A stretch of DNA of 64,000 nt from contig NC_082710.1 of NCBI RefSeq assembly GCF_030144855.1, forward strand, positions 173,786,001 to 173,850,000, written 5' to 3'. A program made the position numbers and the translations under genes. This document shows positions 2,913 through 64,000 of the stretch, one piece after another. Within the stretch, counting starts at the first letter, position 1. Every line of letters starts with the position of its first letter. The notes under the pieces were generated by a model, which had not been told where the DNA came from, ran no database searches, and saw only the letters and a program-made list of their open reading frames with translations. The stretch comes from Hypanus sabinus (lineage: Eukaryota).

Positions 2913-3509
2913 ATGGCCGAGGTCGTTCCCGCCAAGGCTGATATTCCCGTCGTTCTTCCTCCTGACACTTCTGCCGGTTCCGACCTCGCCGCCCCTTCGG
3001 CCACGATCGGTACTGCGGCTAAGAAGAAGGCGCTTCATCGGTCTCAAAAGGCCACAGCGGCCATGGTGGTTGAGCAGATCGCGGAGGTGGTAGCCGCCAC
3101 TAAAGAGCGACAGGCCTCTAAGCTGGGCGGTGTGAAGAAAACCATCTCGGCCGCTGGCTACGATGCGGACAAGGCCGTCGCCCGCTCCAACCTGCCAGCC
3201 GACACCTTGCCTAACAAGGGTTCCACCGTGGAAGGCACTGTCGCCGGCAGCTCCGCTTCCGCTCTTCGCCCGGATCAGGAAGCGGAGGGCGAGCGGGGAG
3301 AGTCCGAGGACCAGAGGAAAGGAGGGACAAAGAAGAAAGCAGCGACCAGAAAACCGCCTCCGAAAAGATCGGCGGCAGCCAAGTCCGCTGCCCGGAATCG
3401 TGCCAAGAGTCCCAGCAAGCGCATAACGGCCAAGGCCAAAAAAGCGCCGAAGCGTCCCGCTGCTTCCCGGGCTGCTGGGCGTGGCCGCCGGGCTGCCAAA
3501 CGGAAATAG
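2913..3509 (+). CDS. H1-derived basic protein A (198 aa) with degenerate globular domain
   Basis: Intronless ORF from ATG 2913. VAATKER..KLGGVKKTISAAGYD..NKGS aligns to the H1 winged helix; K/A/P/R-rich tail with SPSK; canonical stem-loop 22 nt after the stop. Confidence 0.85.
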   Translation: MAEVVPAKADIPVVLPPDTSAGSDLAAPSATIGTAAKKKALHRSQKATAAMVVEQIAEVVAATKERQASKLGGVKKTISAAGYDADKAVARSNLPADTLPNKGSTVEGTVAGSSASALRPDQEAEGERGESEDQRKGGTKKKAATRKPPPKRSAAAKSAARNRAKSPSKRITAKAKKAPKRPAASRAAGRGRRAAKRK

Positions 3510-3531
3510 AGGTTAAGCATCTGAAACCAAA

Positions 3532-3547
3532 GGCTCTTTTCAGAGCC
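3532..3547 (+). terminator. Histone 3' stem-loop
   Basis: GGCTCTTTTCAGAGCC preceded by CCAAA; purine-rich AAAGGGGAG about 15 nt downstream (HDE-like). Confidence 0.95.
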
Positions 3548-5319
3548 GCGCAAACATCTTCAAAGGGGAGGGCTACACAGTAACATCCAGGACTGGTACT
3601 AAGTCCACAGCTTAAGTATACAGACACCACATACTGACCCGAGATACACTTACTTACAGCCATTCTCAGTACAACCAAGAAATACAGTAAGTGGAAAAAA
3701 CAAAATACAAAAGAAAAGCAAATAATACTGAGAACATGAGTTAGTCCATAGGTTGTGAAATCAGCTCGGAGCTGAAGTGAGTGAAGGTATTTCCCCTGGT
3801 CCAGCTTCTTGAAGCTGCTGGTGTGGGACCTAAGCTCCCCGTACCTCCTGTCCAATGGTAGGAGCGAGTGGAGGGCGTGGACTGGATGGTGGTGAAGGAT
3901 TCTGCTTTTTGTGGCATTCGCGGGCACGTCTATCCAAGAATCATTAACGTCAGGAATCCAGTTTCCTGATTATTTGATGTATATATATCTATTACCTTAA
4001 GAATTAATTATTCGAGAAATACAGTTCTCCTGAGCAGAGATTTAAAAAAACACCACCCTCCCTGTTAAGTCACTTCAGGTTATAAATTAGCAATGGCAAT
4101 TTATTATTCTGAATTTTTGATATTTACACCCAGACTTCTCATCGGAAGCATCCGAGAACACCCCTAATTTCTTTTTTTTCCTATTCTAAGCTACAGAAAA
4201 TAGAGATGTTTTCTCAGCCTCTCCTGTAGTGAAACAAACTAACTGTCCCAGCGGCATTAAACAGTCCACTGGAGGAACGGGAAGAGGATTGTTGACGTTT
4301 ATGGCTAGGGTTTCATTGAAACCCACGTATTAAGCCCTGATTCAAGGTTTTAAACTGAATGTTACTGAAGTTCTGCGATTTGTGGATTGGATTGGCACTC
4401 AGTTTGACATTTTTAAAAAATATTCTGTGTTTTTGCCCGTTCTTTCTGGTTGCTATTTGCCGCAATTTGTGCGAGGATGGGGAGGGGGGTGGGGTACAGT
4501 TGAAGTGTCTCTGTGAATGACCTGCATGGTTCTTCTTTGTTTCGGGGCTATCTGGAGAAGAACAGACTCAGAGCTGTATACTGCATACTTACTTTGATAA
4601 TAAATGAACCTTTAAATCCGTTCATGGAAACGTGGAGAATTCCTTCCCCAAACACCAGCCCCTCGCTCCCTGGAGATTCTCTTCTACCAGATGATTTCCT
4701 CCAGCAGATTGTTTCTTGCTTCAGTCTTTCATGTCAACCAATGACGAAACTGTGCTGCACACCTCTTTTGGTGAAGTACGCCTCTGTTTAAAAGTGACAC
4801 AAGCTAAGCTAACTACAATAACCTGGATATCTCTCCATTGTGATTTGCTCCTTCAGATAAATTCTCTGATAATTAACATGGGCCAATGTTGGCTTCAGCG
4901 ACTTGTGTAAGAATAAATCATTGACCTTTTTAAATATCAGATTCAGAATCATTTATTTATCACATGTATATTGAAACATACAGTGAAATGTGTTGTTTGT
5001 GTTAATGACCAACACAACATAAGGATGCAGGACACCTTCATTTCGGGAAATAAGATGGTTCTTTGGTCAGCAAGAGCTGTGCTTTCGTGCACCATCAGGA
5101 AGACTAAATGTGATTATTAGCAGAGAATATACAGCATTTCAGGGATGCCAGAGACACTTGGTGCATCTAGCAGGGCACTCAAACCATTATGGATTTCACT
5201 CTTCCCATCAATGACAATGAGCTAGGCCGAGTGTCTTTTATACACAATTTGATGCATGGAATGATGTGTCCGTGAGGAAGCCCCCCCCCCCCCACAAAGT
5301 GCAGGCACTCTGCCTGGCA

Positions 5320-8920: not shown

Positions 8921-9346
<426 letters not shown>

Positions 9347-10897
9347 TTATCACGTGACACTCCTCCGCCGCTCGCCCCTACTCTCTCTTTCGCGACATAA
9401 CGTAAAATCTAATAAAGGTACTTCCACTCGTCGGAAATAAATAAATGCATGTTTCTGTATTTTCTTGCAAATTAACATTCTCAGTAAAACAGAAAACAGC
9501 ATTTTTGTTAGACAATCAGAGAAAATGTTAAAACCTTGTAATTTAATTGGAGGAAAATAAGTAATGCTAGGGAACTAGACGCATTTCTCGGCGATAGTCT
9601 TAATGCCTAAATGTAAATGTTGTTTTTAGTTTCACTAGGGCCAAATTTATCGCAGGGGGAAAAAAAGATCTTGACGATAAACCACTAATTTTGCACTATC
9701 GGTTTATTTATTTTACTATTTGTTCCCTTTTATTTACTTGCACAGTTCGTCTTTTTTGCTTATTGATTTGTGTGTAGATTTTCACTGATCCCGTTGCCTT
9801 TCTTTTATCTGCTGTGAATGACTGCAAGAAAATGAAACTTAGGGTTGTATATTGTATGTGTACTTTGATAATAAATTTACTTTTAAGTTTGAACTTAAAC
9901 TACGATTGCTCCAAGGAGCCTAATTCTTCATTAAGTTCTTTATTAGCAATTAGCAAGCATGCAAGCTTAAGCTAAGTGCAATTGAATGTTATTCAGTGAT
10001 GTTGAGTGATCTGCAAAAGATATGACATCCAGCAGCCCCAAGCAACAACTGTAAAGAGCAAAGCACGAATACGTGATTTATTCCGTTCACTTTTGCCAAG
10101 CCACTATTTCTATAATAAACACAGAATACAGTGCAGATAGAGAACAGCATGTTTACATTGTAAATACATGCTGTTATTTATATATTGATGTACATTTTAT
10201 CCATCTGCATACTTTAACCTCAAAGTCTATGTTATACAGTATAACCTTTTATTCTTTATAATTGCTGAATGTTGTTTTGTGCTGCATGTTACTCTCCGAT
10301 CAACTCACCACTGCAAACTCCTAAATGTGTATGGGGAATAAAGTTGATCCTTGATATTAATTCCCAGAACAGATTAAAGGAAGCTTCCTGCTGAGAGAGA
10401 AATTAGGCTAACATGCGATATTGAAGGTCAGAGTGACAAGGTGTAACTTGCTGTCATAGGGAGTGGTTGAGGAGAATAGATGGACAAGGGAACTGGATAA
10501 ATACATGAAGGAGGAAGGAAAAGAGGGACATGCAGCTGGGCAGAGGACGAAAGGTAGGAAGAGGTTTCTGCAGAGTGAGATTAACAGTATTAAAAATGGA
10601 GAGCATGATTAGGGTAAGGGCAAGAGGTTTAGAGGAGAACAGAAGTAAGATTATTTTCCATTCAAGGTTGGTTGGACTTTAGAACACACTGCCCGAGGAG
10701 GCAGTGGATTTAATCACCAAGGTGTAGAAGGCTACAGGCCAAGCGCTGCTAAATGGGGTTTGTTTAGAGATTAGCTTAGTGTTTCCCATCTATAGTGAAA
10801 CATTCAAACATGCAGCAAATTGCATCTTTTGTGTCAATGACCAACAGTCTGAAATGTGCTGGGAGCAGCCTGTAAGAGCCATCATGCTTCCAGTGCC

Positions 10898-19541: not shown

Positions 19542-19937
<396 letters not shown>

Positions 19938-20060: not shown

Positions 20061-20759
20061 GAAGACAAATCAGAAACAGGCGAAAATCTGCAGATGCTGT
20101 AAATCCGAATAACACACACACACAATGCTGGAGGAACTCAGCAGGCCAGACAGAATTTATAGAAGATAAAAAAATACTTTCAGGATTAGGTACTTTTTTT
20201 TCCATAGATGCTGTCCCGTCTGCTAAATTCTCCAGCATTTTGTGTAAGAAGACGAATCAGCTCCGTTTTCTAGATCACTTGTTTCTAAGTAGATTAACCC
20301 AGCAGGGTATATCCACAAAACATAATTTTTATTCATTTTATTTTATAGCCTTTAACGTTATAAATATTCCAGAGATTGGAATAAATTATTTGTGTATTGA
20401 ATATACAGTATATTTGCTATGAACCATTGACGTAAGGTCTAAAAGGTCAACATGATATATATTGAATAATTAATTTTATTTCAGTAAAAGTTATCAAAAG
20501 TCATGAAGTGTTGCAAAACTTCCCATCAAGCTTATTTTCGATACAGATCCCGTTTTATACTATTAGTCCAGACAGGAAACGCATAAAAAGGATGATGAAT
20601 TTGCCTGTCAGCATGTGTGCGATACAATAAAAAGTGTTAATAATATCTCCGGCATTTGTTGACTGCATCAAAATTTATATGAATAATTGGAAGAATCGAA
20701 AAAGACGGAAAAGCTTGTTTGTGTCGTAATGTATAGCCGTTCGATTGAAACGTGTGCAT

Positions 20760-20775
20760 GGCTCTGAAAAGAGCC
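20760..20775 (-). terminator. Histone 3' stem-loop
   Basis: Minus strand GGCTCTTTTCAGAGCC preceded by AAAA. Confidence 0.95.
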
Positions 20776-20802
20776 TTTTATGTTCAGATAGTTGGCTTCC
20801 TT

Positions 20803-21591
20803 CTATCTCCGTTTGACTGCCTGGTCCCGCCGCCTGGCTGCCCGGGAAACAGCGGGCCGCTTGGGCCCTTTTTTGGCCATGGCCGTCGTGCACCTGCGGG
20901 GGCTTTTGGCCGCCTGCTTTCGGGCGGTGGGCTCAGCTGCTACGGCTCTTTTCCGGGCGGTGGGCTTGGCTGTTGCGGCTCTTTTCCGGGCGGTGGGCTT
21001 GGCTGCTCCGGCTCTTTTCCGGGCGGTGGGCTTGGCTGTTGCGGCTCTTTTCCGGGCGGTGGGCTTGGCTGTTGCGGCTCTTTTCCGGGCGGTGGGCTCC
21101 GCTGCTACGGCTCTTTTCCGGGCGGTGGGCTTGGCTGCTCCGGCTCTTTTCCGGGCGGTGGGCTTGGCTGCTCCGGCTCTTTTCCGGGCGGTGGGCTTGG
21201 CTGCAACAGCTCTCTTCCGAACCTTTCTCCTGATCTCCTCTTTACTCTGCTTCTCGACCGCCGCCTCCTGATTCGAACGGAGAGCAGAAGCGGAGCTGCC
21301 AGCGGCAGCACCTCCCACAGCGGAACCTTTGTTGGGTAAGGTGTCGGCCGACTGCCTGGGGCGGGAGCTAGCCTCGTAGGCGGCGGCCGAGGTGGTTTTC
21401 TTCACGGCGCCGAGCTTGGTCGCCTGGCGCTCCTTGGTGGCGGTCACTGCTTCCAGGATGTGCTCGGCCATTGCGCCTTTCTGCGACCTATAACCTGCCT
21501 TCTTCTTGGCAGCCGACAACAGGCCAGTGGCGGCAGGAAAGGGACAGTTGGGAGCCGCACCATCGTCTTTAGTAGAAACGGTGTCAGCCAT
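20803..21591 (-). CDS. H1-derived basic protein B (262 aa) with degenerate globular domain and 11-aa repeats
   Basis: Intronless ORF from ATG 21591; paralog of 2913-3509 (ATKERQA.KLG.VKKT.SAA.Y, DTLPNKGS, AGSSASALR); canonical stem-loop. Confidence 0.88.
   Translation of the reverse strand: MADTVSTKDDGAAPNCPFPAATGLLSAAKKKAGYRSQKGAMAEHILEAVTATKERQATKLGAVKKTTSAAAYEASSRPRQSADTLPNKGSAVGGAAAGSSASALRSNQEAAVEKQSKEEIRRKVRKRAVAAKPTARKRAGAAKPTARKRAGAAKPTARKRAVAAEPTARKRAATAKPTARKRAATAKPTARKRAGAAKPTARKRAATAKPTARKRAVAAEPTARKQAAKSPRRCTTAMAKKGPKRPAVSRAARRRDQAVKRR
20923..21219 (-). repeat. Coding minisatellite, 9 x 33 bp
   Basis: Encodes RKRA(VA/GA/AT)A(K/E)PTA nine times. Confidence 0.95.
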
Positions 21592-21690
21592 TCCACGCAA
21601 TCGCCTCAAGACGCGGCGGATCGGCGGCGGCTCCCGTTTAAAGGCGAGAAGCGGACGAGGTAGAACTAACCAACCTCCTCTTTCTTATGT

Positions 21691-22146
21691 AACAACACAC
21701 ACAAAATGCTGGTGGAACACAGCAGGCCAGGCAGCATCTATAGGGAGAAGCACTGTCGACGTTTGGGGCCGAGACCCTTCGTCAGGACTAACTGAAAGGA
21801 AAGATAGTAAGAGATTTGAAAGTAGTGGGGGGAGGGGGAAATGTGAAATGATAGGAGAAGACTGGAGGGGGTGGGATGAAGCTAAGAGCTGGAAAGGTGA
21901 TTGGCGAAAGTGATACAGAGCTGGAGAAGGGAAAGGATCATGGGACGGGAGGCCTCAGGAGAAAGAAAGGGAGATGGAGAACAGATAGTGAGAGGGGCAG
22001 AGAGAAATCAATGTCATCAGGTTGGAGGCTACCCAGACGGAATATAAGGCATTGTTCCTCCAACCTGAGTGTGGTTTCATCTTGACAGTAGAGGAGGCCA
22101 TGGATAGACATATCAGAATGGGAATGGGACGTGGAATTAAAATGTG
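21691..22146 (-). mobile_element. Penelope-like element 3' end (GIY-YIG C-terminus plus terminal repeat)
   Basis: Minus strand HFNSTSHSHSDMSIHGLLYCQDETTLRLEEQCLIFRLGSLQP, then a pyrimidine tract and a hammerhead-like motif at 21753-21790. Confidence 0.75.
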
Positions 22147-22385
22147 TAGTAGTTAGAGCAATGCTATTACAGCGTGAGGCACTCTCGAGTTCAGAGTTGA
22201 GTTCTGGCGCTGGCCCTGTAAAGAGTCTGTGTGTTCTCCCCAGGTGCTCTGGTTTTCTCCCACGGTCCAGACATAGGGAGCAGGTTAATTGTTCTGTGAT
22301 TCGGTTAGGGTTAATCGGGGTTGCTGGGGGCGGTATGGCTGAAAGTCCAGCTCCGCGCTATATGGCTGGCTAAATAAATAAATAA
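22147..22385 (+). mobile_element. V-SINE (HE1-like)
   Basis: tRNA-like head, GCTCTGGTTTTCTCCCACGGTCCA core, (TAAA)n tail. Confidence 0.6.
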
Positions 22386-29446: not shown

Positions 29447-30205
29447 ATGTCCGAGAACCAGAAGGCGGCAGATGGCAGCGATTCCGGTGAAAAGGGAGGC
29501 GGTGGAGGCGCCGGCGGCACCACTCCGCCTCAAGGTCGGACGGCGCCGGACAAGGATGGGGCGGTGAAGAAAAAGAAAAAGCAACAACAACCGTCGCAGC
29601 AACAGGTTCAGTCAAAGGCGCCTCAGCAGTCCAAGAAGCCGCAGAATGGCCCCACCATCACCGACCACGTCCTCTCTTTGGCGGCAGCCACCAAGGAGAG
29701 GCGTGGCATCTCGCTGGCAGCCCTGAAGAAAGCGCTGACGGCCAAGGGTTACGATGTGAACCGCAACAACGCTCGCGTCAACCTGACGGTACGCCAGCTA
29801 GTGCAGAAGGGCTCGCTGGTGAAGACGAGCGGCCACGGCGCCGCCGGCTCCTTCAAGCTGAACCGGCTGGCGGCTCCCAAGCAAGGAAAGAAAGAGGCAA
29901 CCCGCAAGAAGGTGGCTTGGCGCACTCCTACCCCTTCCAAGAGGACGCGGAACAGGAAGAGGAGTCCAAGGCGCCAGACTAAGCCACGGAAGACCACCGC
30001 ACGCCCCCTCAAGCGCCGGCCCAAAACGGGTGCCCGGCCCCGCGCCAGAGCCAAGGCTCGTTCCCGCCTCAAGCGTAAAGTAGGCAGGGCTCGGACGGCA
30101 CGGGTCTATCGCCGGTACAAATCGGCTAAAGGCAAGAGAGCGAATCGCGGACGGACCCGGCAGCCAGTGGGGCGCCAACGGCAACTCGGACCCCGGCGCT
30201 ACTAG
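29447..30205 (+). CDS. Histone H1 variant / protamine-like protein (252 aa) with intact winged helix and Arg-rich C-tail
   Basis: GPTITDHV..ATKERRGISLAALKKALTAKGYDV..LVQKGSLVKTSGHGAAGSFKLN is a good H1 globular domain. The last 88 aa have 29 Arg and 12 Lys. TATA and stem-loop present. Confidence 0.93.
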   Translation: MSENQKAADGSDSGEKGGGGGAGGTTPPQGRTAPDKDGAVKKKKKQQQPSQQQVQSKAPQQSKKPQNGPTITDHVLSLAAATKERRGISLAALKKALTAKGYDVNRNNARVNLTVRQLVQKGSLVKTSGHGAAGSFKLNRLAAPKQGKKEATRKKVAWRTPTPSKRTRNRKRSPRRQTKPRKTTARPLKRRPKTGARPRARAKARSRLKRKVGRARTARVYRRYKSAKGKRANRGRTRQPVGRQRQLGPRRY

Positions 30206-31916: not shown

Positions 31917-32324
31917 CTACTTGGAGCTCGAGTATTTGGTGACCGTTTTTGTTCCTTCCGAGACGGCGTGTTTAGCCAGTTCCCCGGGCAGCAGGAAGCG
32001 GACGGCGCTCTGGATCTCCCGGGAGGAGATGGTCTGGCGGCGGGTGTAATGCACCAGGCGGGAAGCCTCGGACGCGATGCGCTCGAAGATGTCGCTGACG
32101 AACGAGTTGAGGATACTTATCGCCTTGGACGAAATGCTCGTGTCCGGGTGGACCTGCTTCAGCACTTTATAGATATAGATGCTGTAGCTCTCCTTCCTGC
32201 TCTTCTTGTGTTTCCTGGTTTTCCTGTTCACCTTCTTGGCGTTTTTCTTGGAGCCCTTCTTTGACACGGTGCTCGTGGAACTCTCAGCCGTGCCATTTGT
32301 GGAAACAGCATCAGCGGTCAGCAT
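31917..32324 (-). CDS. H2B: Divergent histone H2B variant (135 aa)
   Basis: Complete histone fold ([33 protein letters not shown]), novel N-tail, octamer promoter, stem-loop. Confidence 0.96.
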
Positions 32325-32503: not shown

Positions 32504-34104
32504 TAATCCGTGCTCGGATGCACAAATAGCAGCGGGACTTGTGTTTCTATTTGTAACCGTAACGAGAACAGCGAGAACTTTAAAATGTCGAAGAACGCCG
32601 TTATTTAATAACCAAACTAGATTTTAAACCTCGCCTCTAGAAACAATCATGCTCAAGTAAATTAATTTGTGTTGCAAAACATAAAGAAATTTGACTCATC
32701 TTCAAAGGCTAAGAAGAAAATCGAAACCTGAGGTCTTGTGCAACAACAGCAAAATGCGTTTAATGTAGGAATATTCGAGGTGTGCATATAATACAGCATC
32801 GCAGCACATGTGAAAGTTTTCCATATTTATTGGCGATTTGTTTCAACCAGTCTCCACATTTACAGTGACATTTTGAGCCTATGGCGACTCCTAAGGTGTT
32901 AGTGCAGGACCCAATCTAATCTCGTTTATTACCTGTCAGTTTGTACTCCTCCTCTCCTACCCCCCTTCTTATTTTTGTGGCTTCTGTCCCCTTCCTTTCC
33001 AGTCCTGATATGGAATCATCTTGAAGACTGACTGTTTATTCTTCTCCATAGATGCTGTCGGATCTGATGAGTTCCTCCAGCATTTTGAGTACCTTAGTGG
33101 AGGTTTCCAGCATCTGCAGAAACTATTATTTCAGTATGTCTATGTTAGAGGCATTCTAACTATTCTGAATATACTAAGGGTCCTGAATATTTTTACTGAA
33201 TTGTTCAGAGGTAACAGTGATGCTGCTGAAAGTAAGTTTTTCACTGCACCTGTGCATATGAAAATAGACCTGAGTTTGACCTTAACTCGGCCAAGGCTCT
33301 TGGAGAGTCCAAAGCACCACATCATCTGGTACACATTTCTGCTAGACACACCCTGAAAAATTAGCTTTCCTTTTCCATTCACTCTGCCCAAGCTTGTCAT
33401 TATTTCCTCTCTGCCTCTTATCACTTCCTTAGTAACAGCATTTCCCTCCCATTGATCACAGGGTAACTGGTCCATGTTTCCTCAGGTTATCGTAGCCGGG
33501 GGTGGAAGTAGGGATAAGCTCCCACTACCTATAAACTGCTCCAAATGGCTTGTGACTCTAACAGCCTCTGACAACCAAGTCCAACTCTTGACCTTCATGT
33601 GTGGCTTAGCTACTAGGCCCAGTGGAACTGTTTCTACTGATGAGAGAAGGGGCAAAGGCGGACCACTGGTGCCTCAAAACCAAACGCTTCAAGCAGGCGG
33701 GACTCATCAGCCTTGGATGGCAGCCCACCTGGGAGAAGGAAAACTGTTATTTTAAACCCCCGCTGCCTTGTGGCCAAAGCCACCCATGGGAGAGGCTTCG
33801 GGAGTAAACCCTGAGGAAGGAATCCACAACTGGGTCCCTAAGCCAGTTTGATGTTGTTTAAAACTTCACTCTGGCAACCTCTACGACCACACTGGTGCCA
33901 AACTGTATCGGTGTTTGCCACATCAGTGACTTAGAGAGGGGGAGCCCACTGCATGGGCACAGCCGGTTCTTCAAATCTTCCCACCCAGGCTTGCACCCTG
34001 GAAAGGACACGGTCCACCAGAGGCACAAACCCATGATCCTCTGTGATCGGCGGCTGCCTGCTAATAGAACTCACTTTATAACCATTTAACAATCACAGCA
34101 TGGA

Positions 34105-35575
34105 AACTCCTAGTCCGTGGCAAACTCTTAATCTCACCTGGTCCCACCTACCCGCATTCAGCCCATAACCCTCCACTCCTTTCCTGTCCATATACCTATC
34201 CAATTTTACCTTAAATGACACAACTGAACTGGCCTCTACTACTTCTACAGGAAGCTCATTCCACACAGCTATCACTCTCTGAGTAAAGAAATACCCCCTC
34301 GTGTTTCCCTTAAACTTCTGCCCCCTAACTCTCAAATCATGTCCTCTCGTTTGAATCTCCCCTACTCTCAATGGAAACAGCCTATTCACGTCAACTCTAT
34401 CTATCCCTCTCAAAATTTTAAATACCTCGATCAAATCCCCCCTCAACCTTCTACGCTCCAATGAATAGAGACCTAACTTGTTCAACCTTTCTCTGTAACT
34501 TAAGTGCTGAAACCCAGGTAACATCCTAGTAAATCGTCTCTGCACTCTCTCTAATTTATTGATATTTTTCCTATAATTTGGTGACCAGAATTGTACATGA
34601 TATTCCACTGCCTTACCCTCGTCAACATTCCTCGTAACTTCTTCAAAAAATTCAATAAGGTTTGTCAAACATGACCTTCCACGCACAAATCCATGCTGGC
34701 TACTCCTAATCAGATCCTGTCTATCCAGATAATTATTAATACTATCTCTAAGAATACTTTCCATTAATTTACCCACCACTGATGTCAAACTGACAGGTCT
34801 ATAATTGCTAGGCTTACTTCTATAAACCTTTTTAAACAATGGAACCACATGAGCAATACGCCAATCCTCCGGCACAATCCCCGTTTCTAATGACATCTTA
34901 AAGATCTCCGTCAGAGCTCCTGCTATCTCTACACAAACTTCCCTCAGGACCTGGAGATTTATCCACTTTTAAATTTCTTAAAAGCGCCAGTACTTCCACC
35001 TCTTTAATTGTCATAGGTTCCATAACTTCCTTACTTGTTTCCCACACCTTACACAATTCAATATCCTTCTCCTTAGTGAATACCGAAGAGAAGAAATCAT
35101 TCAAAATCTCTCCCATCTCCCTCGGCTCCACACATAGCTGTCCACACTGATTCTCTAAGGGGCCAATTTTATCCCTCACTATCCTCTTGCTTTTAATATA
35201 ACTGTAGAAACCTTTCGGATTTACTTTCACCTTATTTGCCAAACCAACCTCATATCTTCTTTTAGCTTTTCTAATCTCTTTCTTAAGATTCCTTTTACAT
35301 TCTTTATATTCCTCGAGCAATTCCTTTACTCCATGCTGCCTATATCTATTGTAGACATCCCTCTTTTTCCGAACCAAATTTCTAATATCCCTTGAAAACC
35401 ATGGTGCTTTCAAATCTTTAACCTTTCCTTTCAACCTAACAGGAACATAAAGATTCTGTACCCTCATAATTTCACCCTTAAATGACCTCCATTTCTCTAT
35501 TACATCCTTCCCATAAAACAACTTGACCCAATCCACTCTCTCTAAATCCCTTCGCATCTCCTCAAAGTTAGCCTT
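34105..35575 (-). mobile_element. CR1 LINE with two internal deletions and still-open ORF2 segments
   Basis: ORFs 34898-35659 and 34093-34896 are CR1 ORF2 (VDKSPGP, NYRPVSLTSVVGK, QHGFVRGRSCLTNL) joined directly to the C-terminal EYHVQFW; RT core missing. Confidence 0.92.
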
Positions 35576-35699
35576 TCTTTTCTCCTTTTTCTTAAACAGA
35601 GTTATACAATGCAGAAATGGATCCCTCTCCTGAGCCTCTTCACATAGTTCAAAGTACATTTATTATCAGAGAATGTATACCCTATACAACCTTGAAATT

Positions 35700-39069: not shown

Positions 39070-39402
<333 letters not shown>

Positions 39403-43649: not shown

Positions 43650-46600
43650 TTAGGAACACAGAAAACCTACAGCACAATACAGGCCCTTCGGCCCACAAAG
43701 CTGTGCCGAACATGTCCCTACCTTAGAAATTACCTAGGGTTACTCATAGCCCTCTATTTTTCTGAGCTCCATGTACCTGTCCAGGAATCTCTTAAACAAC
43801 CCTACCGGATCCACGTCCACCACCGTCGCCGGCAGCCCATTCCACGCTCTCACCTCTGAGTAAAAATAACCTATCCGTGACATCTCCTCTGTACCTACTT
43901 CCAAGCACCTTAAAACTGTGCACTCTTGTGCTAGCCATTTCAGCCCAGGGAAAAAGCCTCTGACTGTCCACAACGATCAATACCTCTCATCACCTATTCA
44001 CCTCTATCAGGTCTCCTCTCATCCTCTTTCGCTCCAAGGAGAAAAGGCCGAGTACACTCAACCTATTCTCATAAGGTATGTCCCCAATCCAGGCAACATC
44101 CTTGTAAATCTCCTCTGCCCCCTTTCTATGGTTTCCACTTCCTTCCTGCAGTGAGGCAAACAGAACAGAGCACAGTACTCCAAATGGTGCAACATTACCT
44201 CTCAGCTCCTAAATCAAACCCTTGGATCATGAAGGCCAATGCACTGTATGCCATCTTAACCACAGAGCCAAACTGTGCAGCAGCTTTGAGTGTCCTATGG
44301 ACTTGGACCCCCTCTGATTCTCCACACACCCAAGATTCTTACCATTAATACTATGTTCTGCCATCATATTTGACCTACCAAAATGGACCACTTCACACTT
44401 ATCTGGGTTGAACTCCATCTGCCACTTCTCAGCCCAGTTTTGCATCCTGTCAATGTCCCATTGTAACCTCTGACAGCCCTCCACACTATCCACAACACCT
44501 CCAACCTCTGTGTCATCAGCAAATTTACTAACCCATCCCTCCACTTCCTCATCCAGGTCATTTACAAAAATCATGAAGGGTTAGGGGTCCCAGAACAGAT
44601 CCCTGAGGCACACCACTGGTCACCGACCTCCATGCAGAACATGACCCGTCTACAACCACTCTTTGCCTTCTGTGGGCAAGCCAGTTCTGGATCCACAAAG
44701 CAATGTCCCCTTGGATCCCATGCCTCCTTACTTTCTCAATAAGTCCTGCAAGGGGTATCTTGTCAAATGCCTTGCTGAAATCCATATACACTACATCTAT
44801 GGCTCTACCTTCATCAATGTGTACAGTCACATACTCAAAAAATTCAATCAGGCCCAGAAGGCACAACCTGCCTTTGACAAAGCCATGCTGACTATTCCTA
44901 ATTATGTTATGCCTCTCCAAATGTTCATAATCCTGCCTCTCAGGATCTTCTCCATCAACTTAACTGCCACTGAGGTAAGACTCACTAGACTAGTCTATAA
45001 TTTCCTGGGCTATCTCTACTCCCTTTCTTGAATAAGGGAACAACATCCGCAACCCTCCAAACCTCTGGAGCCTCTCCAGCCCTCATTGATGATGCTAGGA
45101 TCACCGCCAGAGGCTCAGCAATCTCCTCCCTCACCTCCCATGATAGCCTGAGGTACATCTCGTTCAGTCCTGAGACTTATCCAACTTGATGCTTTCCAAA
45201 AGCTCCAGCACATCCTCTTTCACAATATCTACATGCTCAAGCTTTTCAGTCTGTTGCAAGTCATCACTACAATCACCAAGATCCTTTTCCATAGTGAATA
45301 CAACATTCATTAAGTAGCTCTGCTATCACCTCCATTTCCATACACACTTTTCCACTGTCATGCTTGATTGGTCCTATCCTCTCTTATCTTATCCTCTTGC
45401 TCTTCACATACTTGGGGTTCTGTTTCCAATCTGTTTTCTATCTGTTTCCAGTTTATGCTTCCAATTTCCTGCCTGATAGCCTCATATTTCCACTTATTCC
45501 AATTAAACACTTTCCTAACTTGTCTGTTCCTAACCCTCTTCAATGCTCTGTTAAAGGAGATAGAATTGTGATCACTATCTCCAAAATGCTCTCCCACTGA
45601 GAGATCTGACACCTGACCAGGTTCATTTCCCAATACCAGATCAAGTACAGTCACTCCTCTTGTAGGCATATCTACATACTGTGTCAAGAAACCTTCCTGA
45701 ACACACCTAACAAACTCCACCCCATCTAAACCCCTCACTCTAGGGAGATACCAATCGATATTTGGAAAATTAAAACTCCCACCACAACAACCCTGTTATA
45801 TTACACCTTTCCAAAATCTGTCTTCCTATTTGCTCCTCGATGTCCCTGTTACTATTGGGTGGTCTATAATAAAACACCCAGTAGAGTTATTGATCCCTTC
45901 CTGTTCTTAATTTACACCCACAGAGACTCGGTAGACAATCGCTCCACAACTTCCTCCTTTTTTGCAGCTGTGACACTATCTCTGATGAACAAGGCCACAC
46001 CCCCATCTCTTTTGCCTCCCCCCCCCCATCCCTTCTGAAACATCTAAAGCCTGGCACTTTAAGTAACCATTCCAGCCCCTGAGCCATCCAAGTCTCTGTA
46101 ATGGCCACAACATCATAGCTTCAAGTACTGATCCACACTCATCCACTTTGTTCATCATACTCCTTGTATTGGAATATATATATCTCAAACCATTGGTCTG
46201 AGTGCATCCCTTCTCTATCACCTACCTATCCTCCCTCTCACACTGTCTCCGAGCTTTCTCTGTTTGTGAACCAACCTCCTCTTCCTCCATCCCTTCAGTT
46301 CAGTTCCCACCCCGCAGCAATTCTGGTTTGAATTCTCCCCAATCCTCCCCGCCAAGGTATTGGTCCCCTGGGATTTAAGTGCAATCTGTCCTTTTTGTAC
46401 AGGTCACACCTGCCCCAAAAGAGGTCCCAATGATCCAGAAACCTAAATCCCTGTCCCCTGCTCCAATCCCTCAGCCTCGCATTTATCCTCCACCTCATTC
46501 TATTCCTATACTCACTGTATCTCGAGATTACTACCTTTGAAGTCCTGCTTCTCAGCTTCCTTCCTAACTCCCCGTAGTCTGTTTTCAGGATCTCGTTCCT

Positions 46601-46940
46601 TTTCCTGCCTATGTCATTGGTACCAATATGTGCCACAACCTCTGGCTGTTCTCCTTCCCACTTCAGAATATCTTGGACCTGATCAGAAACATCCTGGACT
46701 CTGGCACTTGGGAGGTGTTTGTTTCCTGTATCCACAGAATTGCCTGTCTGACCCCCTGACTATAGAGTCCCCTTTCACTGCTGCCTTCTTCCTCCTTTCC
46801 CTACCCTTCTGAGCCACAGGAGCAAACTCTGTGCCAGAGGCATGACCACTGTTGCTTCCCCCAGGTAGACCATCTTCCCCACAACAGTACTCAAGTAGGT
46901 GTACTTATTGTTAAGTGGGACAGCCACAGGGTTACTCTCA
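43650..46940 (-). mobile_element. Near full-length decayed CR1 LINE
   Basis: ORF1 esterase-like (HIGTNDIGRK, FLDHWDLFW; 46295-46735), APE (AITETW, LDLVL, GDSDHN), RT (DFSKAFDK, SGVPQGSVLGP, KFADD) and 3' end in the correct order. Confidence 0.93.
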
Positions 46941-63370: not shown

Positions 63371-63453
63371 ATGGTAACCCAATGTGTTTCTTTTGCACAA
63401 GAGATTCGGAAGAAGCTGGAAAGCTGGCTCGTACTCCTTCCTCACTCACCCAC

Positions 63454-63772
63454 CTTCCCGTTCACCTGATTTCCCCCATCACCTGCCAATTCGTTCTCCT
63501 TCCCCTTCACCTGATTTCCCCATCACCTGCCAATTCATACTCCTTCCCCTTCACCTGATTTCCCCCATCACCTGCCAATTCATACTCCTTCCCCTTCACC
63601 TGATTTCCCCCATCACCTGCCAATTCGTACTCCTTCCGCTTCACCTGATTTCCCCCATCACCTGCCAATTCATACTCCTTCCCCTTCACCTGATTTCCCC
63701 CATCATCTGCCAATTCATACTCCTTCCCCTTCACCTGATTTCCCCCATCACCTGCCAGTTCATACTCCTTCC
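63454..63772. repeat. Minisatellite, ~7 x 45 bp, within a Penelope-like terminal region
   Basis: Unit CTTCCCCTTCACCTGATTTCCCCCATCACCTGCCAATTCATACTC; followed by a degenerate hammerhead CTGATGAAGGGTCTCAGCCGAAA at ~63821. Confidence 0.9.
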
Positions 63773-64000
63773 ACTCCCCTCAATTCCTTGTTCTAACTTC
63801 TCCCTTCTTCTTTTCCGGTTCTGATGAAGGGTCTCAGCCGAAAACAGCAACTTTTTATTCCTCTTTGTATTTGCTGCCTCATCAGCTGCACTTCTGCAGC
63901 AGTGTGTGTGACTGTGCGTGCGTGATTGTGTGTGTGTGTGTGTGTGCACACGCGTTGCTAGCATCTGCACTCTTTTGCTTATGAAATTTCTTAGATAACT

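Follow-up and report, generated by a model that had tools for sequence, protein, structure and literature searches.

We found that protein B, one of two related proteins (A and B) encoded in the window, i.e., the whole 64-kb stretch of stingray DNA that was analyzed, is probably the product of a protein-coding gene maintained by selection: a fast-evolving paralog in an elasmobranch-only family that originated from a linker histone H1 variant. The gene has kept the format of a histone gene, being intronless, located in a histone cluster, and equipped with a TATA-type promoter common to shark orthologs and with a 3' stem-loop. What survives of its globular domain appears to be a string of short conserved motifs within a protein that is predicted to be disordered.

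The coding sequence of B (20803–21591, minus strand) is an intact intronless ORF of 262 codons plus stop, with the ATG start codon at 21591–21589 and the TAG stop codon at 20805–20803, and codes for a product of 262 aa. Its N-terminal segment (aa 1–26, 21514–21591; MADTVSTKDDGAAPNCPFPAATGLLS) contains Cys16, which is kept in the Mobula ortholog (Mobula B), and is followed by the relic of the H1 globular domain (aa 27–110, 21262–21513), in which the motif blocks named by the first-pass annotation are located. The remainder consists of a mixed-charge linker (aa 111–123, 21223–21261; AVEKQSKEEIRRK), nine tandem 11-aa units of the form [AV]RKRAxxA[KE]PT, 33 bp each (20926–21222), and a C-terminal block (aa 223–262, 20806–20925; ARKQAAKSPRRCTTAMAKKGPKRPAVSRAARRRDQAVKRR) that is conserved in the family and includes an SPRR site and Cys234; all of these parts are on the minus strand. 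The array, detected by TRF as a 33-bp unit in 9.1 copies at 20921–21219, is the source of the extra length of B. Plus-strand ORFs over 20752–21339 were rejected as genes, as they are by-products of this array. The whole protein has 35 K and 35 R, a net charge of +55 and a pI of 11.9. As in linker histones, there is a long basic C-terminal tail (aa 124–262), in which the K:R ratio is 1:1 and R/(K+R) is 0.50, compared with 0.13 in a canonical H1. The exact B protein was not found in the public protein collection in which the neighboring H2B variant was found, and B is therefore probably left without a gene call in the annotation of the stingray genome.

Signals of a histone gene were found on both sides of the ORF. 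The 3' stem-loop of B (GGCTCTTTTCAGAGCC; 20760–20775, minus strand) is exact over 16 nt and lies within a match to Rfam RF00032 at 20735–20780; position 20760, the left limit of the feature in the first-pass annotation, is its final base. It scored 27.3 bits, under the gathering score of 34, as did that of the adjoining H2A gene (28.1 bits); three of the stem-loops in the cluster reached the gathering score and the rest scored 23.7–30.1 bits. The stem-loop was invariant across the family genes compared, and together with the lack of an intron it gives B the format of a replication-dependent-type histone gene. The purine-rich sequence that follows, a putative downstream element for U7 snRNP, reads CAATCGAACGGCTA in B and CAAAGGGGAGGGCTA in A, and appears weaker in B than in A, Pristis and Heptranchias. 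On the 5' side, the proximal promoter (21637–21665, minus strand) consists of the family-conserved TTCTACCTCGTCCGCTTCTCGCC and then TTTAAA, located 46–51 nt upstream of the ATG, and is near-identical in Heptranchias. An element of ~23 nt just upstream of the TATA box (21643–21665; TCTACCTCGTCCGCTT.T.GCC) was nearly the same in Heptranchias (L002, about 9915–9940) and was also recognizable in A and Pristis; it may be a promoter element specific to the family. Where A and Pristis have an ATTGG box, B has GTTGG, and a high-copy SINE-like interspersed repeat (21691–22147, unstranded) occupies that place, directly upstream of the promoter. This repeat was delimited by contig word depth, which jumped from ~10 to millions (about 10^5-fold) at 21691 in all four sequencing runs described below, and its start at ~21691 is about 100 nt upstream of the B ATG.

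The window is a stingray histone cluster, and every gene listed here is followed by a histone 3' stem-loop. Besides B, it contains paralog A, which codes for 198 aa (ORF 2913–3509; 2913–3571 with its own stem-loop; plus strand) and served as comparison partner, an H4 gene (8921–9232, minus strand), an H2A gene directly downstream of B on the same strand (19542–19937, minus strand), an Arg-rich H1 gene (29447–30205, plus strand), an H2B variant (31917–32324, minus strand) and a second H4 gene (39070–39402, plus strand). A tblastn search of the 64-kb window found no third family member besides A and B. The H2B variant shares a 90%-identity cluster with a protein from Hemitrygon akajei, a dasyatid, and both the start and the C-terminal end of the H2A adjoining B are unusual. 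Also, positions 2102–2149, about 760 nt upstream of the A ATG, showed an 87.5% match to residues 8–23 of the Mobula A gene model, in which they belong to an upstream 5' exon; A may thus have an additional upstream exon or an alternative promoter. An Arg-rich H1 gene was found next to a family member in Heptranchias and Pristis as well, at a distance of 5–9 kb (L002:4853–5656, minus strand; L001:454–1008, plus strand). Of the winged helix, both proteins keep helices 1 and 2 at least, and the Heptranchias protein has a polyQ run and resembles an ortholog of the window H1 at 29447–30205. The linkage between a family member and an Arg-rich H1 appears to be conserved over sharks and rays. Elsewhere in the window, an ORF at 63384–63824 is made of a tandem 15-aa unit (ITCQFILLPLHLISP), i.e., a ~45-bp minisatellite, and minus-strand ORFs at 34093–35659 and 44227–46735 resemble, as judged by eye, reverse-transcriptase or other retrotransposon fragments.

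Word and profile searches identified family members in Mobula, Pristis, Heterodontus, Heptranchias, Pristiophorus, Scyliorhinus and Chiloscyllium, and further members in Leucoraja, Rhinoraja and Carcharodon came to light in an exhaustive HMMER search. The family is thus represented in sharks, skates, rays and sawfish, with intact homologs in at least 12 elasmobranch species, including an ortholog of B in Mobula. All derived features of the family, namely AVAATKERQA.KLG..KKT.SA, the altered helix 3 and wing, and the C-terminal KSP…PKRPA, are present in B. Next in rank among the HMMER matches came H1 variants of chondrichthyans in which the winged helix is intact, two of them from the chimaera Callorhinchus, and the derived motifs were absent from the examined matches that ranked below these folded H1 variants. 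In the phylogenetic analysis, the family split from the folded H1 variants at 100/100, and B fell inside the family clade; it paired with Mobula B at 100/100 in both trees, within a batoid clade supported at 97/96. A and B each had their own Mobula ortholog with 100% support, and skates were sister to the group formed by the A pair, Pristis and the B pair (96/92), which places the A/B duplication before the stingray–manta split and after the split of skates. Pristis grouped with B at 91/86, a placement that is not decisive since alternatives had an AU p of 0.09. An older 'type 2' subfamily (PATLATMKKTISA or related) was observed in sharks and Mobula (P0014, P0011, P0013 and P0021), with no copy in this window. 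Relatives carry automatic NCBI names such as 'histone H1-like', 'H1.4-like' and 'H1.10-like'. No paper describing the family turned up in literature searches, and the main text of a paper on the catshark semen proteome does not mention histones.

Mobula B (P0010) is encoded by a single 693-nt exon, and ~1 kb downstream, on the same strand, is an H2A gene, an order also seen in the window. Outside the repeats, seven indels separate B from Mobula B, all of them in frame (by chance about (1/3)^7 if indel lengths are unbiased), and A and Mobula A differ by none. Helix 1 is deleted in Mobula B, as are portions of helix 2 and of the wing region, with the frame kept, which suggests that the core is dispensable at least in this protein. 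In contrast to these segments, the blocks ATKERQATKLGAVK, SRPRQ..DTL..KGS and AGSSASALRSNQE are identical in B and Mobula B. Indels that spare the motif blocks fit short linear motifs in a disordered chain rather than a folded domain. The repeat array has nine units in B and eight in Mobula B; unit variants differ between stingray and Mobula and are near-identical within each, which suggests that the array is still being homogenized while its size is kept. Two cysteines (NCPFP and RRCTT) occur in both B orthologs and none in A. The protein path to the Mobula ortholog was 0.34–0.35 for B and 0.15 for A; judged by these path lengths, B evolves faster than A.

Alignments of A and B confirmed the motif comparison made in the first-pass annotation. 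All blocks named there are present in both proteins: ATKERQA[ST]KLG[GA]VKKT[IT]SAA[GA]Y, ADTLPNKGS[TA]V and AGSSASALR..QEA, plus a C-terminal block, for which the spacing had to be corrected to AKSP....T..AKK.PKRPA.SRAA, with four residues instead of two between AKSP and T. N-termini and tail lengths differ as described, the longer tail of B being due to the tandem array. This likeness is not a chance one, as BLASTP gave E = 2e-30 with 54% identity over 120 aa. By the Nei-Gojobori method, dS was 0.73 and dN 0.19 in the core (dN/dS 0.26), and dS was 0.83 and dN 0.29 overall. Identity in the core was 81–85% at codon positions 1 and 2 and 62% at position 3. The 5' flanks were 50% identical and the 3' flanks past the stem-loop matched at 21 of 47 bases; the exceptions to this divergence were functional signals, i.e., the promoter element with TTTAAA, and the stem-loop. 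Aligned codon by codon and region by region, the motifs were thus kept beyond both synonymous sites and flanks, and on this evidence A and B are old duplicates rather than a recent duplicate pair. When the Pristis gene (L001) served as the third taxon, with 2000 bootstraps, dN/dS on the B branch was 0.37 (bootstrap 0.23–0.60), with dN ≥ dS in 0 of 2000 replicates; for the core alone it was 0.26 (0.09–0.81). The earlier proposal that the two proteins form a selected subfamily rather than decaying copies is supported by the old duplication, the dN/dS values, the diverged flanks and the intact homologs. For B itself, selection is supported as a long-term average and unproven for the present-day stingray copy.

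Recent changes in B were analyzed over 21225–22300 using Logan contigs of 458–559 nt from four other sequencing runs; these runs are labeled with different organisms, and their sequences diverge from the window by about 1.4–2%. These contigs looked DNA-like because they crossed the TATA box into the SINE and broke at repeats. In B codons 1–118, there were six nonsynonymous changes and one synonymous change; by a binomial estimate, this ratio had p ~0.03 against an omega of 0.27, ~0.07 against 0.37, and 0.4 against neutrality. Also, the reference-only residues T50, S81 and G93 replace residues kept by the other samples and by the rest of the family, and reference-specific differences were as frequent in B coding sequence (4 in 354 nt) as in the 5' flank (1 in 85 nt). 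There are hints here of recent relaxed or positive selection on B. The former globular region is only loosely constrained in the B lineage, given the in-frame deletions of Mobula and the 6:1 ratio.

We consider it unlikely, although deserving of attention, that B was functional for a long time and is now drifting to a pseudogene in the stingray lineage, its frame being open merely for lack of time. The three derived residues at conserved positions, the flank-like coding rate and the excess of nonsynonymous changes would fit such drift; however, the 6:1 ratio comprises seven changes only (p ~0.07 against 0.37), three of which are in the variable N-terminus, and the 262-codon frame is intact in the window, with codons 1–118 open in the contigs of all four other runs and a 3-nt, in-frame deletion in one run as the sole indel. 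Similarly, the SINE abuts the promoter, the CCAAT-type box is altered and the downstream processing element is weaker, but the TATA box is intact, and so are the stem-loop and the promoter element conserved in the family. Drift would also be consistent with the search for RNA, in which no listed sequencing run containing the B sequence was recorded as RNA and B words were absent from nine candidate RNA runs labeled as related species, and with the absence of the exact protein from the public collection. The RNA result represents weak negative evidence because histone-type mRNAs that end in a stem-loop are not polyadenylated and escape poly(A)-selected libraries.

The H1 descent of the family, claimed in the first-pass annotation, was confirmed by profile comparison: a profile of 13 family members aligned with true H1 globular domains over their whole length (hhalign, 97.4% probability, E = 1.1e-11, 90 columns). 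By this comparison, the family, including B, shares ancestry with H1 globular domains. The signature of the fold was not found with it. B had no Pfam match at E ≤ 1 and did not reach the gathering score of Linker_histone (PF00538), which at E ≤ 10 matched 2 of the 13 family members, the best at 0.017. AF2 with the 13-sequence family alignment gave B a mean pLDDT of 50 and a pTM of 0.13, with helices predicted at 42–49 and 118–124 only; the core thus has the first of these alone, and neither a winged helix nor its beta hairpin was predicted. The control H1 from the same window (29447–30202), with an alignment of two sequences, was predicted as helix-helix-helix-strand-strand at pLDDT 80–90. On these grounds, loss of the winged-helix fold in B is predicted with good support. 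In its first half (AEHILEAVTATKERQATKLGAVKKTTSAAAY), the domain still resembles H1 helices 1–2, and the second half has SRPRQSADTLPNKGSAVGGAAAGSSASAL at the positions of the recognition helix and hairpin of H1.

It is very doubtful that B is still a conventional linker histone, whose divergent winged helix binds the nucleosome dyad and merely defeats the prediction tools. The domain is alignable to H1 over its whole length, but in helix 3 and the hairpin, prolines and polar residues have taken over positions that were hydrophobic (SRPRQSADTLPNKGS; SSASAL for GSFKL). Helix 1 (AEHILEAV) is still predicted and core dN/dS is 0.26; against this, the Mobula ortholog has dispensed with this very helix and with parts of helix 2 and the wing while keeping its frame, and pLDDT was low for B although the control H1 folded with only two sequences. 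Finally, that A and B resemble each other because a dead H1 pseudogene was recently duplicated or gene-converted, rather than through selection, an idea favored by their location in one 64-kb cluster, is refuted by a dS of 0.73–0.83, flanks that are 45–50% identical and a tree in which each copy has its own fully supported Mobula ortholog, with the family spanning sharks, skates and rays, and we give it almost no credence.

If B is a selected gene, as we favor, it would be made from a histone-type mRNA and enter the nucleus, where its repeat tail would bind DNA and neutralize it electrostatically, like the C-terminal domain of H1 or a protamine-like protein, and, unlike a folded H1, would do so without docking on the nucleosome dyad. 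The conserved motifs may serve as linear sites for binding or modification, and the two cysteines of the B clade could allow disulfide cross-links. The one pointer to a possible germline or early-embryo role is the surrounding cluster, which is composed entirely of histone variants; the company of B there includes the Arg-rich H1 neighbor that also stands beside family members in Heptranchias and Pristis. We tentatively suggest that B may represent a folded linker histone in the course of turning into a disordered, cysteine-bearing, repeat-tailed DNA condenser of germline or early-embryo chromatin in stingrays and mantas. With similar caution, its winged helix might be seen as reduced to a few linear motifs, in a vertebrate parallel of the invertebrate path from H1 to protamine-like proteins.

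The winged-helix domain is what defines a linker histone, and vertebrate H1 variants are not known to lack it. In this family, and most clearly in B, an H1 domain seems to be breaking up into short conserved motifs in a gene that remains open and selected, and the basic tail appears to have been rebuilt by tandem amplification alongside the loss of the domain. To the family, B adds an independent proof of selection and a distinct lineage that is repeat-tailed, cysteine-bearing and faster-evolving. A, B and the Mobula ortholog that lacks helix 1 form a natural series for asking which parts of H1 are needed without nucleosome docking, and the H1 origin of protamine-like proteins becomes testable in a vertebrate, although practical value is limited until expression of B and its protein are shown.

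Compared with known systems, B is closest to paralog A and the rest of the elasmobranch family, with which it shares the motif blocks, the C-terminal KSP..PKRPA, the promoter element, the stem-loop and the lack of a Pfam match. It differs from A in net charge (+55 versus +25), pI (11.9 versus 10.8), two cysteines versus none, the tail of nine 11-aa repeats and a 3-aa deletion after helix 2. In the exhaustive search, the nearest relatives outside the family were folded Arg-rich chondrichthyan H1 variants (P0020 of Leucoraja, P0022 of Heterodontus, P0023 of Narcine and P0029 of Callorhinchus), which share with the B family the N-terminal part KKK..YR..K.G..AEQI..AVAATKER; their helix 3 and hairpin (…NTRVNRAVRTLVSKGSLVQTTGSGASGS…) are of the ordinary kind, whereas the B family has replaced both. 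With canonical H1/H5 (PF00538), B has in common its descent, the histone cluster, the stem-loop 3' end, and the layout of a short N-terminus, a central region and a basic tail; unlike B, these proteins have the winged-helix signature and predicted fold, and their tail is Lys-dominated. Protamine-like (PL) sperm proteins of invertebrates are H1-derived, strongly basic and Arg-enriched, with simple repetitive tails and rapid evolution, and B resembles them in all these respects. However, PL-I proteins retain the winged helix, and the K+R content of whole B, 27%, is lower than is usual for PL proteins. Kinetoplastid and Tetrahymena H1 are basic proteins without a globular domain, essentially the tail alone. 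B is similar to them as a basic protein of the linker-histone type without a winged helix, but it is of vertebrate origin and still has a recognizable, conserved remnant of the domain, unlike these protist proteins.
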